64,000 bases of DNA from Hamiltosporidium tvaerminnensis FI-OER-3-3 (Eukaryota > Fungi > Microsporidia): contig CM061254.1 of the NCBI GenBank assembly GCA_022605425.2, positions 620,001 through 684,000 of the forward strand, read 5' to 3'. Made by a program: the position numbers and the translations under genes. Shown piece by piece: positions 15,251-38,987 of the stretch. The stretch's first letter is position 1; every line of letters begins with the position of its first letter. The notes under the pieces are model-generated. The model was not told where the DNA came from and searched no databases. It saw only the letters and a program-made list of their open reading frames with translations.

Positions 15251-16019
15251 ATTCATTCGAGCAGTATTTAGACCATGCTTGAATGCCTAATTTAATACAA
15301 AGAAAATAACTAAAACTACTTATAAACGTTTCTGTCGAGCAAATCAGAACCTTCTTTAGGAATTTATTTGTTCAAACCAAAAATACTCCTTCTAAATACT
15401 CTATACCTCTCTTAACCAATCTCACAAGGTTTTGTATTTCTAGAATAATCTATATTAATATGTAAATATCTAATAATTAATTCTCATAAATAAGATTAAA
15501 AAAAATTTTACATCTAAACTGTTTATTTTCTTACATTACGCGCTTTAAGTAAGCAATGCAATGAGTTATGTAGTTAAAGAATTCTCTGTCACGTATAAAA
15601 AGCTTCTATAAAAATTAAAAAGGTTTTAATTAATTTTAAAAAATACTATAAATTATTCATTTATAAGTAATAAATATATATTTTCAAATTATCTTATCTC
15701 TGTTAAGTGATAGTTCAATTTACCGCAAATATTAGAGTTTAGCTTAAAAACACATAATAGGCTATATTATATTAAACCGACATTTGAAAAATACACAGAG
15801 TTATAACAGAACTTTAAACCTCTAAATAAAAAACTTAAATTTCTACAAAGTATAATTATTAAGTTCCCTGCTCTAAGCTATTTAAAACACACATATAATT
15901 TTATTTAAGAAATTCTTTCATTTAATATATAACTCTCTTATACACTCTAAGTTGATATATTACTCACTTGTTCCTATCAATACTACATTGTTCTCTCATT
16001 TAATAAATATCCCCTCTTA

Positions 16020-16180
16020 GATCTATCTATCAGATATCTATCCCTCATATCTATCCCTCATATATCTATCCCTCATATATCCATCCCTCAGATATTATCC
16101 CTCATATATCTATCCCTCATATATCTATCCCTCATATATCTATCCCTCAAATATCTATCCCTCTAATATCTATCCCTCTT
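16020..16180. repeat. Tandem minisatellite, ~13-17-bp unit (AT)ATATCTATCCCTC, about 10 copies
   Basis: Directly visible repeats of ATCTATCCCTC. Confidence 0.95.
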
Positions 16181-16245
16181 AGATATATCAATCTAATATA
16201 TTTACTATAAGAATTACATTTAAAATAAAATACATTACTTATCCC

Positions 16246-16425
16246 ATGGATGCTTTAGAAGGTGAGAAACTATGTAAGAAATTAGAAGAAGTAAATAAAA
16301 ATATAATTTCAGAATTAGATATAAGAAACAATAAACTTAAAAAAGCTATTAATTGTAATACACAACTAGAAAAGAAACTTAAAATGTATGAAAAGTTATT
16401 TCTAGAAATTTCTAAAAAAAAGTAA
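16246..16425 (+). CDS. Small coiled-coil protein, 59 aa (below ORF-track cutoff); possible DASH/Dam1 subunit, Dad1/Dad4-like
   Basis: MDALEGEKLCKKLEEVNKNIISELDIRNNKLKKAINCNTQLEKKLKMYEKLFLEISKKK*. CCC immediately before ATG after an AT-rich stretch; heptad pattern. Confidence 0.65.
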   Translation: MDALEGEKLCKKLEEVNKNIISELDIRNNKLKKAINCNTQLEKKLKMYEKLFLEISKKK

Positions 16426-16547: not shown

Positions 16548-16915
16548 GTATTAACACCCCTTTAGTCATACTCCTATAGTTAACACCCCTTTATACATAC
16601 CTATTAGTATTAACACCCCTTTATGCATACCTATCTACTTAAAACCCCGTTATATATCTTTATTAGTATTAACACCCCTTTATACATACCTATATACTTA
16701 ACACCCTTTTATATATCAGTAATAGTATTAACACCCTTTATACATATCTATGAGTATTAACACCCCTTTATACATACCTATCTACTTAAAACCCCTTTAT
16801 ACATATATATTAGTATTAACACCCCTTTAATCATCACTATATACCTAACACCCCATATCATACACTCTATATACTTAACACCCCCTACTACCCTATCATA
16901 TTATAACACCCCTTT
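16548..16915. repeat. Array of ~13 TAACACCCC-core units spaced 28-30 bp
   Basis: Core at 16553, 16582, 16612, ~16641, 16671, 16700, 16730, 16759, ~16788, 16818, 16847, 16877, 16905, with variable linkers. Confidence 0.95.
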
Positions 16916-16986
16916 TAAAATCTAATCTTAAATAAACAAATCACTAATTTTTAAAATAAAAAAATAATCAAAACAAACAAAAAAAT

Positions 16987-19900
16987 ATGCTTAAAAATGA
17001 AAATACAACAGATAAGACTTTATGTTCTGAAGAAATTGAAAGTGCGAAATTACTTGGTTTTAAAATTGTTAAAATACTTGGAACAGGTACTTACGGTAAG
17101 GTAGCTTTGTGTATTAAAAATAGTGAAATTAACACATGTTATTATAAAGATAGTGATTATCATTACACAGTAGGTAATAAGACTGATAGTGTTAATGATT
17201 TATATTCTAATAATGGATTTTTAAGCAAAAGCATACCCTTTAATACAAGTACTGTTAATAACACCCCTAATACAAGTACTGTTAATAGCGCCCCTTTAAA
17301 TAACAGTTATCATAATAACACCCTGTTAAATACTAAGATTACAAATAACACCCATTTAAATACAAGCACTCTTAATAACACCCATTTAAATACAAGCACT
17401 CTTAATAACACCCTGTTAAATAACAGTCATGATAATAACACCCTGTTAAATAACAGTCATGATAATAACACCCTGTTAAATACAAACTATACAAATAACA
17501 CCCTGTTATACAACAATACTAACACTACACTTTACTATGCACTTAAGTTTATAAGAAAAGATACAAAGGATTTAAAAGTACATTTTGACAGAATAAAATC
17601 AGAAGTACAGCTACACTCACTTCTTAACCATTCAAACATAGTAAAACTATACTATTCAGTACAGACTAAACACCATATAGTACTTGTTATGGAATATGTT
17701 AAAGGAAAAGAATTATTCTATCATATACAACAGAATACTAAACTGTCTGAGGAACAGTCTCGGTATATATTTAATCAGATACTTGATGCTTTAGAATATT
17801 TACATGCTCATAATATAATTCATAGGGATATTAAACCAGAAAATATTATTATAGGGTACGGTAACAGTAGTAAGGGTGTTATTAATAGTAGGGGGGTGTT
17901 ATATAATGATAAAGGGGTATTAGAGACATTTAGTAACAAAGGGGTGTTATACCATAATAGTAATGATAATACCCTATTAGATACTAGTACTGCTAATAGC
18001 ACCCTTTTAAATAGTAGTAATGTTAACACCCTATTAGATACTAGTACTGCTAATAACACCCTATTAGATACTAGTAATGATAATACCCTATTAGAACCAG
18101 ACATTGAGGACAATACCTCTTTAAGTAACAGTAGCTATAATAACACCCTTTTAACTATAAGTACCAACTATAGTACCTATAGTAACACCCCTTTAACTAC
18201 CACTAGTACTACTTCTTATATTAGCACCCCGTTAACCAATAATACTATTAATAACACCCCTTTGACTACTACAACCACACCCTCTATTAATAACACCCCT
18301 TTAACTAACACTACTACACCCTCTATTAATAACACCCCTTTAACTAACACTACTACACCCTCTATTAATAACACCCCTTTAACTGACACTACTACCACCT
18401 CTATTACTAACACCCCCTTACCTACTCTTTCAGTCAAAATAATAGACATGGGATTTGCTACTCTTTATGATCCGAAAACCACAATAAAGAACTACTGTGG
18501 TTCTCCTTATTATTCACCACCTGAGATGATAAACGGTAGTAGATATATAGGACCAGAGATAGATATATGGAGTATGGGTGTTCTATTATATAACATGGTA
18601 GAAGGTAAATTACCATTCGATGCTAAGAGTTTAAATACGTTATACAGTAAAATTAACAGGGGTTCTTTTAAATTAAGCAATAATATTTCTTCTTCACTTA
18701 AAGACCTGTTAAAATGTATGTTATGTGTAGATATTAGTAAACGTATTACATTAAAGGGGGTTAAGGCACATGTATGGACTAAAGGGGTATGTGTTAATTA
18801 TTGTTTTGAAAGGATATCATATGTAGACCCTTTAATCTTTAGTAAGGTTGTTGAGTACTTTAGTGTTTGTGGGAGGTTCTTATATAGGAAGGGACGTGTT
18901 AATAATAGGGATAGGGTTGTTGAGAGGATAAAGGGTGTTAGTTATAGAGGTATAGATGGGGGTGTTAATGATAGGGATAGAGTGATTGAAAGAATAAAGG
19001 GTGTTAGTTATAAAGGTATAGATGGGGGTGTTAATCATAATGGAGAGGGTATGGAGGGTAATTATGAGGGTGTTAATAACAAAGATAGTAATTATAAGGG
19101 TGTTAATAATAGTACTATCCTAGAGGGTGTTAATTATGACTGTTGTATGTGTTATACTGGTACCTGTTGGGATAACACCCTTTATGATTTGAATAAGCCT
19201 ATTCAATTATCTAATGGTACAGTAAACACGTTGTTTAACAAATTATATCGAAATAATTCAACAGAAACAAAAATATATACTTTATTACAAAATAAAATGA
19301 TAAGTGGAGTATCTTTACGTGAAGTAGGAATTATAAGAAATGTATGTTTTGATAGTAAAATGTGTTGTCCTATTCTGTATTCGGAGAGAGGATGTATGAA
19401 GCAGAATTCAATTAATTTTTATGCGGAAAAAAAATGTTTTATAGGTGAATGCATAAACAATTTGATATGTAATAAGGGTGTTAATGACAGTACTGTAAAT
19501 AACGGGTATAAATATATTGATATGAATAATAGTATAATATATGATGGAGGTGTTATTTATAATAATGGTAAAGGAAAAGAACATATAAATGAAATTTTAA
19601 TGGATAAGAAGAAAAACAAACCGATGTGTTCGTTAGGTTGGGTATTTGATAAGATTAAAGGATTTTTTAAAAGAAAAAATGTAAAAAAGCAAATTCATCA
19701 TAAAACTACACTGACGTGTACGAATATAAAAGAAATAATATATGATTTGGTTAAAAGTTATGAATATAAGGTATCGCGAGATAATAAAGTATTGAGTTTG
19801 TTAATTCATGAACCTGAATGTGTGTTGATTGATATTATTGTAAATGGAGATTTTAGAATTTTTAAGGTTGAGATTTTGTATGTGAATGGGTGCAGAGATA

Positions 19901-19995
19901 CTTTTGATTATTTTTGTTTTCGATTAATGAAAGAAATACGGGATATGGAAGATGGCAGAATTGTTGGTGAAAAGTATAGAAGTGCGACTTTTTAA
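16987..19995 (+). CDS. Ser/Thr protein kinase, CAMK group (KIN1/MARK/SNF1-like), with three large low-complexity insertions
   Basis: GTGTYGKV, YALKFI, SEVQL, VMEYVKGKELF, HRDIKPEN, DMG, CGSPYYSPPE, YIGPEIDIWSMGV, LPFD. UBA-like relic after the kinase domain. The C-terminal alpha/beta region is compatible with a KA1 domain. Confidence 0.93.
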   Translation: MLKNENTTDKTLCSEEIESAKLLGFKIVKILGTGTYGKVALCIKNSEINTCYYKDSDYHYTVGNKTDSVNDLYSNNGFLSKSIPFNTSTVNNTPNTSTVNSAPLNNSYHNNTLLNTKITNNTHLNTSTLNNTHLNTSTLNNTLLNNSHDNNTLLNNSHDNNTLLNTNYTNNTLLYNNTNTTLYYALKFIRKDTKDLKVHFDRIKSEVQLHSLLNHSNIVKLYYSVQTKHHIVLVMEYVKGKELFYHIQQNTKLSEEQSRYIFNQILDALEYLHAHNIIHRDIKPENIIIGYGNSSKGVINSRGVLYNDKGVLETFSNKGVLYHNSNDNTLLDTSTANSTLLNSSNVNTLLDTSTANNTLLDTSNDNTLLEPDIEDNTSLSNSSYNNTLLTISTNYSTYSNTPLTTTSTTSYISTPLTNNTINNTPLTTTTTPSINNTPLTNTTTPSINNTPLTNTTTPSINNTPLTDTTTTSITNTPLPTLSVKIIDMGFATLYDPKTTIKNYCGSPYYSPPEMINGSRYIGPEIDIWSMGVLLYNMVEGKLPFDAKSLNTLYSKINRGSFKLSNNISSSLKDLLKCMLCVDISKRITLKGVKAHVWTKGVCVNYCFERISYVDPLIFSKVVEYFSVCGRFLYRKGRVNNRDRVVERIKGVSYRGIDGGVNDRDRVIERIKGVSYKGIDGGVNHNGEGMEGNYEGVNNKDSNYKGVNNSTILEGVNYDCCMCYTGTCWDNTLYDLNKPIQLSNGTVNTLFNKLYRNNSTETKIYTLLQNKMISGVSLREVGIIRNVCFDSKMCCPILYSERGCMKQNSINFYAEKKCFIGECINNLICNKGVNDSTVNNGYKYIDMNNSIIYDGGVIYNNGKGKEHINEILMDKKKNKPMCSLGWVFDKIKGFFKRKNVKKQIHHKTTLTCTNIKEIIYDLVKSYEYKVSRDNKVLSLLIHEPECVLIDIIVNGDFRIFKVEILYVNGCRDTFDYFCFRLMKEIRDMEDGRIVGEKYRSATF

Positions 19996-22900: not shown

Positions 22901-24239
22901 ATCTATAAGATATATTCATTCAAATTTTTATTTTAGCATACGACCTTTTATTCCTTAATTGATTATATTATATATATCGATTGAACCATATAATAAAGTT
23001 TTCTTTTTTTTGGTTCATGAAGATTTAAGAGCTTTAATACAATATACTTTACATTATATTCATTATATTGAACTAATTATGAGTCGATATCGATTTTTAG
23101 TGTCAAGAGATAGACCTTTAATTATTTAGAAACCAGTGCGGTTCTTTTTCATAAATTGTAATTTTATTATATTTTTTTCCTGTTCTTAAATTCAAACGAC
23201 ACATAATGAATTATTTTTTATGATTTTCAGAAGATTCTTCTGTGATTTTTTTTTCAAACAATAAATTTTAAAACATTTGCTTTTAATTATAAGATTTAAT
23301 TTTAAAGATATAATTATTGTTTATGTGGCCTTACTTTAAGATTTAATGTACTCTAAAATCATTCAAACATATTTTAAACGTATAATTTTATGTGGTTTTT
23401 AGAATCTTAAATTACACGCTGAATGTAAAACTAGTTTATCTAAGTTTACAACCATATTTATAGTATTTGTAAAGATTTTATATATAACTCTAAAAAATAT
23501 TGTTTTTTAAGTATTTTTGTTGATTTTAATCTGTTGAACTGCAAGAAATTAGGCAAACTTTAGATATTTTTTTTTAATGTTACAACCGAATCAGTATCTA
23601 AATCAATTTTTTTAAAAAAATATTAATAAGCATTTATTCATTTTAAATACGAATAACAAAATAATATGTTTATACACACAAAGAAATCTTAAAACATTTA
23701 AGTATCAATTTTATACTTTATATATTTTTTTAGCTCACATTTGTATTAACCATAGAAAATAATATGTTAAAACTAAATAATAGATAAATAATTACAAATA
23801 TAGTTTATTACAACAATATTCGGTTTCACTATGTGATATGATTTTCTTTATTTTCCTACCCATCATTTTTATATTCACATTCAAGTGTAACTACAAGTTT
23901 GATATTTTCAAGATATATACGACTATTTTTTATCTGAGAATTGACATACTCATATTTCAGACCTTTTACCTGAATACAGTAAGTTATATCTTCATATTCC
24001 ATCTTTTTATAGTACATTATACTTATACTATGATCATCGTGTTTAAAGTTAATATCCTCCAAACTAAGTCCTTCAGGTATATTATAATATAATTTTATCT
24101 CCCTTATATTATCATTATTTGTACTCTTTTGTACTCACCTAATAATGGATTAATAGTAAAAATAATCATTATATATAAAAGAAACATTTAATGAATACAA
24201 ATTTAAAAATATAAATATTTATACTTTAATATTTATTAA

Positions 24240-38405: not shown

Positions 38406-38987
38406 ATATTTCTACTAATTTATCACAATTATTAGATTTCTTAAATATATTTTATTTGTAATATTCCCTATATTTCTACTAATTTATCACAATTATTAGA
38501 TTTCTTAAATATATTTTATTTGTAATATTTCCTATATTTCTACTAATTTATCAGAATTATTAGATTTCTTAAATATATTTTATTTGTAATATTCCCTATA
38601 TTTCTACTAATTTATCACAATTATTAGATTTCTTAAATATATTTTATTTGTAATATTTCCTATATTTCTACTAATTTATCACAATTATTAGATTTCTTAA
38701 ATATATTTTATTTGTAATATTTCCTATATTTCTACTAATTTATCAGAATTATTAGATTTCTTAAATATATTTTATTTGTAATATTTCCTATATTTCTACT
38801 AATTTATCACAATTATTAGATTTCTTAAATATATTTTATTTGTAATATTTCCTATATTTCTACTAATTTATCAGAATTATTAGATTTCTTAAATATATTT
38901 TATTTGTAATATTTCCTATATTTCTACTAATTTATCACAATTATTAGATTTCTTAAATATATTTTATTTGTAATATTTCCTATATTT
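38406..38987. repeat. Homogeneous 64-bp minisatellite, 9 copies
   Basis: TCTACTAATTTATC recurs at 38411, 38475, 38539, 38603, 38667, 38731, 38795, 38859, 38923. Only two variable sites (CAC/CAG, TTCCC/TTTCC). No spacers. Confidence 0.98.

Follow-up and report, generated by a model that had tools for sequence, protein, structure and literature searches.

The arrays in the 64-kb stretch of Hamiltosporidium tvaerminnensis DNA analysed here (the window) are probably local members of a genome-wide minisatellite family, built on a short core that we infer to persist as a cis-acting DNA site. The repeat unit comprises an 8–11-nt core, TAACACCC(Y)(Y)T, joined to a linker of ~20 nt. Units are chiefly 30 or 27 bp long, with additional lengths of 39 and ~58–60 bp, and the strand that bears the core is poor in G. 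The core motif goes unmentioned in the papers that we consulted on the H. tvaerminnensis genome.

Results

The core motif forms phased clusters at many loci

Exact copies of the core (TAACACCC/GGGTGTTA) number 42 in the window, whereas 100 shuffles gave 0.54 on average and never more than 3, and 40 of them fall within 16552–19483. The arrays are real, and the cores lie at the spacings and on the strands given in the original prediction; the TRF periods over 16548–19111 are 27, 30, 39, 59 and 66. The same prediction had confined the motif to an island of ~3.5 kb, which holds for the window but fails for the genome, where the core is abundant and clustered at many loci. In H. tvaerminnensis as a whole (21.64 Mb in 17 contigs, 26.6% GC) there are 6,387 exact cores as against 288 copies of a control word, and 1,224 phased core triplets as against none in the control. 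Genome-wide mapping, which had been suggested as a check, thus found the motif phased, clustered and on both strands.

A logo of 794 cores showed an invariant core and variable linkers. Among the sampled loci, which are cluster-containing loci picked on contigs 1–2, the spacing modes were 30, 27, 39 and 60 bp, with 30 and 27 bp accounting for most spacings inside ORFs; genome-wide, triplets with both spacings of 28–29 bp were rare (70 of 1,224). The linkers of 30-bp units were also compared between loci, and 55% of units matched a unit from another locus at 18 or more of 22 positions, compared with 5.7% after a phase-preserving shuffle. Judged by these matches, whole units, beyond the cores alone, are related among arrays in different genes.

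The arrays share the properties by which minisatellites are recognized. Units of a length within ~10–100 bp stand head to tail and their number varies among isolates and close relatives, as in VNTRs, and one core is common to arrays at many loci, as in shared-core minisatellites. A search of Rfam gave no match, and the 120 hits of a metagenome scan for the phased pattern (29–69% GC, periods 9–30) were unrelated tandem repeats.

Non-coding arrays

A non-coding array on the forward strand (16548..16915) contains 11 exact and two degenerate TAACACCC cores in units of 28–30 bp, the cores lying on the G-poor strand. Its exact cores (16552–16904) are spaced by 29, 30, 59, 29, 30, 29, 59, 29, 30 and 28 bp, and within each of the two 59-bp gaps, at positions 16640 and 16787, stands one degenerate copy of the core, TAAAACCC. 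The ATG of a kinase gene lies 76 bp downstream of the last core. This array is also found in H. magnivora, where it differs by a 58-bp (two-unit) gap.

Elsewhere, ORFs contain ~62% of the arrays that were sampled and 47 of 124 are not wholly within a called ORF, shares that are biased because the loci were chosen on contigs 1–2 for their clusters. Several of the sampled arrays are clearly non-coding, with spacings of 28–31 or 38–42 bp and linkers that differ between arrays. The modal period in non-coding arrays is 29–30 bp, equivalent to 2.8 helical turns rather than 3. In one old-looking non-coding array (L009) the cores and a phase of ~29 bp have been kept and the linkers are unrelated. We also observed an ORF-free array block of ~1.7 kb, present in five copies near contig ends, all of them in the orientation of the telomeric C-strand. 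An early count of 8:2 raised the possibility that non-coding arrays are oriented with respect to the gene downstream of them, but this was not established when more loci had been added: in the sampled loci 10 arrays have the same orientation as the next gene and 6 the opposite.

Arrays within the coding sequence of a kinase

An uninterrupted ORF of 1002 aa on the forward strand (16987..19995), encoding an AMPK/Snf1-like Ser/Thr kinase, hosts the coding arrays of the window. Pfam detected Pkinase in two stretches (2.3e-62) and otherwise only PK_Tyr_Ser-Thr and Kinase-like (below its cut-off), with no repeat family. The best match is AMPK alpha-1 (6.9e-49), followed by SIK, Snf1 and MARK. Residues K187, HRD 279–281, N286 and D487 are invariant in the kinase alignment, and DMG stands at the position of DFG, the usual motif in kinases. 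On its sequence, the host gene is an AMPK/Snf1-family kinase with intact catalytic residues. Its non-array codon positions diverge by 0.3, 0.2 and 1.7% from those of H. magnivora, which indicates that the gene is under purifying selection.

Insert 1 (17241..17516, forward strand) occupies the β2–β3 loop, at residues ~47–160, and contains seven C-type cores (17316–17496) at an exact spacing of 30 bp, read as N-T-(L/H/P)-L; its units are reshuffled relative to H. magnivora. Insert 2 as a whole substitutes for the two-residue β7–β8 turn, kinase residues 290 and 481 aligning with AMPK alpha-1 residues 138 and 141. The first part of this insert (17862..17950, reverse strand) bears G-type cores, which appear as GGGTGTTA on the coding strand, at 17874, 17894 and 17942, read in two frames as KGVI, RGVL and KGVL. 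Its second part (17954..18424, forward strand) has C-type cores read as NTLL and then NTPL, in units of 27/30 bp followed by units of 39 bp; the cores at 18252–18408 are exactly 39 bp apart, and further spacings are 30, 42, 69 and 87 bp. Beyond the kinase domain, on its 3' side, lies an array of G-type cores (18896..19140, reverse strand) read as (K/G/E)GV(N/S) with spacings in the range 27–42 bp (cores 18933–19125, spaced by 27, 39, 27, 42, 30 and 27 bp). It is followed by a lone C-type core read as DNTLY (19173..19180, forward strand) and by a lone G-type core read as NKGVND (19476..19483, reverse strand). The kinase cores are thus translated as NT(L/P)L on one strand and as (K/E/G)GV(N/S) on the other.

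AlphaFold2 modelled the kinase lobes confidently (block mean pLDDT 78–98) and assigned a pLDDT of ~30 to inserts 1 and 2, insert 1 being without secondary structure; the downstream array (18896..19140) is likewise predicted to be disordered. The kinase arrays sit in surface loops with predicted disorder, and purifying selection continues to act on the kinase core. The kinase inserts are in frame and 0.3–0.6 kb long, far longer than the introns of this species, of which only 98 are predicted, with a mean length of 28 bp (PMC10542269). Since the frame is open, the length greatly exceeds that of introns and the deposited H. magnivora protein contains the inserts, we read them as probably translated.

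Other hosts of arrays include genes for a DEAD/DEAH helicase, a PI3/PI4 kinase, a class V myosin and a HEAT protein, a distribution indicating that arrays are tolerated in unrelated housekeeping genes. The original prediction rightly associated such repeat-rich proteins with Hamiltosporidium.

The core is a DNA-level entity

Within ORFs the core is present in either orientation and in every frame, in agreement with the proposal that the conserved unit is DNA rather than peptide. The codons used are nearly fixed. In [KQE]GVx peptides (n = 308, from 42 ORFs) the K/Q/E codon ends in G in 289 cases (94%; background 25–27%), glycine is encoded by GGT in 297 (background 52%) and valine by GTT in 304 (background 48%). 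The NT[LP]L reading uses AAC-ACC in 42 of 55 cases, where ~5% would be expected, and xHP uses CAC in 91 of 92. The 730 cores in ORFs of at least 300 aa give six readings (GV 386, KGVL 46, KGCY 29, NT 118, HP 122 and TP 29), different readings co-occur within single proteins, and the core is also present in non-coding arrays.

In the frame in which TAA would be a stop, only the T differs (CAA, TTA or TAT precedes CACCC), the remaining core being kept; inside genes, solely stop-free in-frame versions of the arrays are seen. Spacing had been held to be a multiple of 3 throughout the coding sequence. This is contradicted by the cores at 17874 and 17894, which are 20 bp apart because one core is read there in two frames (KGVI, then RGVL), a circumstance that strengthens the DNA-level reading.

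Arrays gain and lose units in frame

In comparison with the window, H. magnivora has an additional 81 bp (27 aa, three units) in the first part of insert 2 (17862..17950), 60 bp (20 aa) in its second part (17954..18424) and 30 bp (10 aa, one unit) in the downstream array (18896..19140); one 3-bp indel in the coding sequence was also seen. A search for sequencing runs that contain the locus found four, whose contigs behave as DNA, and no RNA run; polymorphism among isolates was assessed from these four. One extra 27-bp unit is present after 17931 in runs X3 and X4 only, and a 3-bp insertion was also seen in other isolates. Between two PI4K paralogues that are 98.7% identical, the sole length differences are indels of 60 and 57 bp. 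Arrays therefore gain and lose whole units among species, isolates and paralogues, as replication slippage or unequal exchange predicts, and the growth and shrinkage unit by unit fits the amplifying process that had been proposed.

All indels in coding sequences are of 3, 27, 30, 57, 60 or 81 bp and are therefore multiples of 3, whereas the non-coding array differs by its 58-bp gap and the non-coding stretch shows 1–2-bp differences in some read contigs. These observations are consistent with the suggested filter of reading-frame selection. These data also show that the arrays did not arise in assembly. Short-read contigs of one run, possibly from the source isolate, show zero differences from the window, and the arrays are reproduced in the three other runs and in the sister species; independent contigs and H. 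magnivora thus both carry them.

Divergence of cores and linkers

The statement that cores are conserved while linkers vary accords with the comparison with H. magnivora, in which 1 of 236 core sites differs compared with 45 of 887 linker sites (Fisher p = 3e-4), a contrast that at the kinase locus depends on the neutral rate assumed. Core third positions changed at 1 of 74 sites, a rate close to the 1.7% of third positions outside the arrays. Unit turnover, or the alignment of non-orthologous units, may account for some of the linker excess. At G/C sites the divergence is 8.5% in linkers and 0.9% in cores, and none of the 19 array SNPs found within the species falls in a core. Change in the linkers is spread evenly over the three codon positions, which implies that the encoded peptides are unconstrained filler.

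Telomere and hairpin models

We examined eight contig starts, seven of which open with (CCCTAA)n, and contig ends read (TTAGGG)n only, in keeping with the TTAGGG telomere repeat of H. tvaerminnensis (PMC10542269). The idea of telomere-like repeat addition is refuted by this telomere repeat, every array having its own linkers of ~20 nt; with their unit of ~30 bp and variable linker, the arrays are not telomeric repeats. A whole-unit palindrome or hairpin (TTAACA-CCC-TGTTAA, with an idealized 27-nt palindromic linker) was rejected as a general model, because the palindromic right arm is in the minority. In the 794-core logo, the TGTT right arm occurs in ~12% of cores (G at +3, 12%) and the linker is strand-asymmetric, with 3–6% G. 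Folding of six 130-nt array segments as ssDNA was no better than that of shuffles (MFE 0 to −7.3 kcal/mol, z −1.75 to +1.80), and the upstream array (16548..16915) was without predicted ssDNA structure.

Discussion

We envisage that the core would persist as a putative cis-acting DNA site, most likely as the target of a sequence-specific DNA-binding factor. Such a site might promote the local duplication and copying of units, giving a self-propagating repeat, or might itself be selected, and new arrays would be seeded through ectopic copying of units between loci. A more specific version, speculative and distinctly doubtful, is that a dedicated sequence-specific factor, perhaps a replication-fork barrier or a protein of nicking or recombination, recognizes the core, drives duplication of the surrounding DNA in steps of ~30 bp and copies units between loci. 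The arrays would then form a 'coding minisatellite' system that propagates itself, through which much of the Hamiltosporidium proteome would have become longer and the genome would have grown in part.

Alternatively, the cores could be phased binding sites with a cellular role, as promoter or initiator elements akin to the microsporidian CCC-like start signal or as chromatin or insulator sites, the coding copies being spill-over. We consider this possible but unlikely. The upstream array stands at the same place in H. magnivora, yet its last core is 76 bp from the kinase ATG and does not adjoin it as does the microsporidian A/T-rich plus (T)ACCC(Y) signal found just 5' of ATG, which the core resembles (PMC2803860). 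The array L009 retains its cores and ~29-bp phase despite unrelated linkers, and the five ~1.7-kb ORF-free blocks near contig ends are uniformly oriented; on the other hand, the 28–29-bp triplets are rare, spacings in ORFs being mostly 30 and 27 bp, the period amounts to 2.8 helical turns instead of 3, orientation to the next gene is divided 10:6, and most sampled arrays (~62%) are inside ORFs. It is also conceivable, if quite improbable, that the arrays are a passive by-product, an Asn-rich low-complexity repeat of an AT-rich genome that was spread by recombination and has no cis function. The conservation of the core would then be only apparent, reflecting a recent common ancestor of the units and linker differences inflated by shuffling. 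This would accommodate the relatedness of units across loci, the fast turnover of arrays and the change of core third positions at about the rate of non-array third positions. It would not account for the near invariance in cores (0.9%) of G/C sites, which usually mutate most in this DNA (linkers, 8.5%), for the retention of the core in non-coding arrays with dissimilar linkers, or for the replacement of T alone in the TAA-stop frame.

An origin from a mobile element, with the arrays derived from a DNA transposon or another element inserting into genes, either as its subterminal binding-site repeats or as its fragments, seems very unlikely: coding arrays are without terminal inverted repeats and change by single units, and the sampled loci contain no transposase that is linked to an array. 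In its favour are the multi-copy ORF-free block built of arrays and the interspersed repeats that make up 39.6% of the genome, most of them unclassified (PMC10542269). Selection for a functional decapeptide such as xxKGVNxx would agree with GV being the commonest reading (386 of 730 cores in ORFs), but is extremely unlikely, given that the same DNA yields unrelated peptides (GV, NT(L/P), HP, KGVL, KGCY, TP) within single proteins, codons are fixed, linkers evolve equally at all codon positions, non-coding arrays exist and Pfam gives kinase-type families only. A protein-level repeat domain was rejected on account of the near-fixed codons and the six readings. Telomerase-type or telomere-like addition and assembly artefact have practically no chance of being correct. 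Although TAACACCC equals telomeric TAACCC with two inserted letters and the subtelomeric blocks have the telomere's polarity, contig ends carry (TTAGGG)n only (PMC10542269), and variable linkers of ~20 nt are impossible from a fixed template. As for an artefact, the arrays are reproduced by independent short-read contigs and by the sister species.

The reading of the arrays as a minisatellite family invites comparison with known systems. Hypervariable human minisatellites sharing a common core were reportedly first described by Jeffreys and colleagues in 1985, and the human core has been suspected of being a recombination signal; for a putative role of this kind, or as an instability signal, in Hamiltosporidium, the contrast between cores and linkers would be indirect evidence. 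As in the human case, the Hamiltosporidium arrays are dispersed, with units of 10–60 bp, a shared short G/C-rich core, G/C strand asymmetry and polymorphic unit number. Unlike human minisatellites they are mostly in frame in housekeeping genes, with either orientation and every frame represented; their host is a 21.6-Mb microsporidian at 26.6% GC, and the core sequence is unrelated.

In Eimeria, CAG and telomere-like repeats occur genome-wide within coding sequences (Reid et al., 2014; PMC4199364). The two systems have in common one DNA repeat across the genome, protein-coding regions included, with amino acids that vary with the frame. The Eimeria units, 3 or 7 nt long, produce homopolymeric runs, the second repeat being a variant of the telomere repeat, whereas the Hamiltosporidium unit is of ~30 bp, has a conserved core and a variable linker and is not a telomere repeat. 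Plasmodium proteins contain polymorphic low-complexity, Asn-rich insertions (PMC3140889). There too an AT-rich parasite has disordered, fast-evolving in-frame loop insertions in conserved proteins, kinases among them, and slippage is involved. We know of no Plasmodium low-complexity regions built on one shared DNA core that is present on both strands and in non-coding arrays.

Start codons of microsporidia are also preceded by a CCC-like or GGG-like signal (Peyretaillade et al., 2009; PMC2803860). The likeness lies in a short (T)ACCC(Y) that follows A/T-rich sequence and can be replaced by GGG, and in the position of the window's array upstream of a gene on the sense strand. The CCC-like signal is present as a single copy directly before the ATG, whereas the array has 11–13 copies and ends 76 bp upstream; moreover, thousands of core copies are inside ORFs and polarity is inconsistent (10:6). 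The arrays were accordingly rejected as instances of this start signal, on the distance to the ATG and the divided orientation.

Microsporidia are a textbook example of genome and protein shrinkage. Here we see the opposite trend in a large-genome microsporidian, with one repeat family placed in frame in loops of essential enzymes, between genes and in subtelomeric DNA. Should the core be a cis-acting site, the arrays would provide a tractable system for studying the seeding and spread of minisatellites, the tolerance of proteins for neutral filler and the non-adaptive expansion of parasite genomes. The arrays are ready hypervariable markers for the Daphnia–Hamiltosporidium coevolution model, and they call for caution in gene annotation and repeat masking.

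A minor observation concerns the two orientations of the core. The G/C asymmetry of the linker flips along with the core, from which it follows that most reversed arrays are true reverse complements; flipping of the core in place was for this reason rejected as a general cause of the two orientations. A subset of cores nevertheless switches in register: of 39 changes from G-type to C-type, 24 lie at exactly +27, and of 18 from C-type to G-type, 9 lie at +33. Such in-register switches leave the linker in place, for instance where QQGVN units are followed by QHP(F/V/L)N units, and these switches could represent short-patch conversion or micro-inversion.

Core arrays in the window and in a kinase gene

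The core TAACACCC, the conserved 8–11-nt part of a repeat unit of ~30 bp, occurs in either orientation 42 times in the 64-kb window, compared with a mean of 0.54 and a maximum of 3 in dinucleotide-preserving shuffles, and 40 of the 42 fall within 16552–19483. An intergenic array at 16548–16915, with 11 exact and two one-mismatch cores in units of 28–30 bp, stops 76 bp short of the ATG of an uninterrupted 1002-aa kinase ORF (16987–19995). Within this ORF, cores on the coding strand (C-type) at 17259–17503 are spaced by exactly 30 bp and those at 18024–18415 by 30 to 39 bp, both groups being read as N-T-(L/P/H)-L. Cores on the opposite strand (G-type), located at 17874–17949 and 18933–19132, are read as (K/G/E)-G-V-(N/S/L/I). 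These counts, spacings and readings agree with the motif positions, strands and translations of the original prediction. Its further claim, that spacing is a multiple of three throughout the coding sequence, holds for nearly all cores; the single exception is the 20 bp between 17874 and 17894, which arises because the core, on an unchanged strand, is translated there in two different frames.

The ORF matches the Pfam Pkinase domain (2.3e-62) in two stretches and is most similar to AMPK alpha-1 (6.9e-49), followed by SIK, Snf1 and MARK; by sequence similarity it is an AMPK/Snf1-like kinase. The only close relative among proteins, a kinase from Hamiltosporidium magnivora, is identical to it in 95% of aligned columns. 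Since query residues 290 and 481 align with AMPK residues 138 and 141, insert 2 (the second array-bearing insertion in the ORF, ~190 aa) takes the place of a β7–β8 turn of two residues. Insert 1 (~115–140 aa) is located after the glycine loop and before the β3 lysine. In an AlphaFold2 model built from a 20-sequence alignment, both kinase lobes have block mean pLDDT values of 78–98, and residues 47–160, 294–478 and most of 623–913 are at pLDDT ~30 without secondary structure, so that the arrays occupy loops predicted to be disordered. At 18445–18530 the kinase reads DMG for DFG and SPPE for APE; the aspartate D487 and the glutamate E513 are invariant across the 20 sequences.

The units form a dispersed family

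The original prediction had confined the motif to an island of ~3.5 kb. This was overturned by a search of the genome (21,638,905 bases in 17 contigs; published as an assembly of 21.64 Mb in 17 contigs with 26.6% GC and TTAGGG telomeres, PMC10542269), in which exact cores number 6,387, compared with 288 occurrences of the reversed control word, and are split evenly between the strands. The 10-mer TTAACACCCC occurs 662 times, against 14 for its control. Spacing is phased, with 1,224 core triplets at 27–31 bp and none for the control; both spacings are 28–29 bp in only 70 of the 1,224.

We then considered 35 cluster-containing loci on several contigs, a choice that over-represents clusters. The window and the first 20 of these loci together have 124 arrays, of which 77 are wholly within ORFs. 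Host ORFs encode a DEAD/DEAH helicase, PI3/PI4 kinase, a HEAT protein and a class V myosin, the head domain of which is broken into six stretches. Core spacings inside ORFs are 30 (180 pairs), 27 (57), 39 (30) and 60 bp (22), and outside ORFs 30 (38), 29 (16), 28 (12), 39 (8) and 31 bp (7). An ORF-free block of ~1.7 kb is likewise built from TAACACCC arrays, set one after another, whose units measure 29, 30/58 and ~38 bp; it is present in at least five copies (L034–L038, respectively at 23–29 kb on contig C13, 1827–1833 kb on C2, 38–44 kb on C16, 889–895 kb on C7 and 1540–1546 kb on C13). Four copies are at most ~40 kb from a contig end and one is ~77 kb from it, and each has the orientation of the telomeric C-rich strand at its own end; of eight contig starts inspected, seven open with (CCCTAA)n.

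The conserved unit is DNA rather than peptide

As predicted, conservation resides in the DNA. All six readings of the six-letter core are found in ORFs of 300 aa or more (GV 386, KGVL 46, KGCY 29, NT(L/P) 118, xHP 122 and TP 29), and codon usage is nearly fixed even when sites are picked by peptide and not by DNA. Of 308 [KQE]-G-V-x sites, 289 have a first codon with G as its last base (background 25–27%), glycine is GGT in 297 (background 52%) and valine is GTT in 304 (background 48%); N-T-(L/P)-L is encoded with AAC-ACC at 42 of 55 sites (~5% expected), and the histidine of xHP is CAC at 91 of 92. In the frame in which TAA would be a stop, that triplet alone is changed (to CAA, TTA or TAT) and the other core letters are retained. 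Non-coding arrays with dissimilar linkers likewise retain TAACACCC(Y)(Y)T, in units of 28, 29, 30, 39–42 and ~58–60 bp.

In a logo of 794 cores, the core is followed by T (0.65) or C (0.31) at +1 and by T (0.78) at +3, and the linker shows a 3-nt periodicity with only 3–6% G on the core strand, an asymmetry of G and C that reverses along with the core. Linkers are array-specific yet related between arrays: among 266 units from 23 loci, each exactly 30 bp long, 55% have a linker match of at least 18/22 at another locus, compared with 0% under full shuffling and 5.7% under codon-phase-preserving shuffling. Whole units, and not cores alone, have therefore been copied between genes.

Many coding arrays pass from G-type to C-type cores with the 30-bp register and the linker unchanged, for example from ...NKQQGVN to ...NKQHP(F/V/L)N units; QQGVN-type to QHP(F/V/L)N-type arrays include L024:5131–9624(-), L010, L011 and L022, among others. 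The distance is exactly +27 in 24 of 39 G-to-C switches and +33 in 9 of 18 C-to-G switches, and thus the CCC or GGG triplet keeps its place between AACA and TGTT-like arms. Such switching could occur by short-patch conversion or micro-inversion. Switches from G to C outnumber those from C to G about twofold along the coding strand (39 versus 18).

Turnover of units and divergence of cores and linkers

The arrays are present in the H. magnivora orthologue of the kinase, and nearly all differences are whole-unit indels within them, of 81, 60 and 30 bp in the KGVL, NTLL and EGVN parts, respectively, with 3 bp elsewhere in the kinase. Units of insert 1 are reshuffled, and the upstream non-coding array has a 58-bp gap, equivalent to two units. 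Within the species, the locus is covered by contigs from four public runs, all belonging to a single study. Of these, one that may be the source isolate has no differences from the window; two (X3 and X4) carry an additional 27-bp unit after 17931, three have a 3-bp insertion after 18079, and some contigs differ by 1–2 bp in the non-coding stretch. The extra KGVL-type unit of X3 and X4 resembles, without being identical to, one of the units that H. magnivora has there, and represents an old polymorphism that is shared, or else a gain that happened more than once. Two inverted PI3/PI4-kinase paralogues of ~1,830–1,870 aa, ~100 kb apart on contig 1 (L015, C1:1165–1175 kb; L016, C1:1263–1273 kb) and 98.7% identical, differ in length only through 60-bp and 57-bp indels, both inside arrays. 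The arrays are therefore real and differ in how many units they hold, and within genes only multiple-of-three changes are seen.

When the H. magnivora alignment is counted with the reshuffled part of insert 1 left out, cores differ at 1 of 236 sites and linkers at 45 of 887 (Fisher p = 3e-4), an excess in linkers that may partly reflect unit turnover or alignment of non-orthologous units; the non-array coding sequence differs at 14 of 1909 sites and flanking non-coding DNA at 9 of 176. At G/C sites the divergence is 8.5% in linkers and 0.9% in cores, and none of 19 within-species array SNPs falls in a core, cores being about a fifth of array bases. Linker divergence is nearly equal across codon positions (3.9, 4.4 and 5.6%), indicating that linkers are without protein-level constraint; the low values outside the arrays (0.3, 0.2 and 1.7%) indicate that the kinase itself is constrained. 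Because core third positions change at about the same rate (1/74) as non-array third positions, and given the possible turnover or misalignment of units, core-specific selection is likely but not proven at this single locus.

Possible role of the core

Overall, there is a dispersed family of related ~30-bp units that are won and lost singly and, in genes, pass a reading-frame and stop-codon filter. Together with these features, we favour, with some reserve, a core that acts in cis as a DNA site, most simply one recognised by a sequence-specific DNA-binding factor. Such a site would either drive local duplication and copying or be selected for a cellular role, and new arrays would start by ectopic copying of units.

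That the core arrays serve a cellular role is the main alternative, and we regard it as rather unlikely. The core resembles the microsporidian CCC-like start signal (PMC2803860), the upstream array is conserved, and the ORF-free block recurs near contig ends in telomeric C-strand orientation; however, coding arrays predominate and polarity towards genes is unclear (10:6). A purely passive origin of the arrays seems less probable still, and an origin from mobile elements would be surprising. Given the codon evidence, a protein-level motif is highly improbable, and we attach almost no weight to telomerase-type addition or an artefact.

Comparison with known systems

The TAACACCC family works like Jeffreys-type minisatellites, a family sharing one core. 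It is also akin to Plasmodium low-complexity inserts and to the repeats found throughout Eimeria coding sequence (PMC4199364). Three features set it apart: its units pair a conserved 8–11-nt core with a variable linker of ~20 nt, within housekeeping genes the core is used in either orientation and in every frame, and one core also builds non-coding and subtelomeric arrays. The literature examined on the H. tvaerminnensis genome makes no mention of the family.

Other repeats are present in the window. A second, G-free array at 16012–16189, just upstream of a 59-aa ORF (16246–16425), has ~12 copies of a 15-bp unit with the consensus CCCTCATATATCTAT and a CCC core; in contrast to the TAACACCC family it is confined to this locus, which holds all six of its matches in the genome. 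A 64-bp tandem repeat at 38406–38987 (9.1 copies, 98% identical, in a stretch of 16% GC) is unrelated to the core family, and one isolated core, at 27711, lies in a GC-rich patch at 24001–28000 (36–38% versus ~26%).
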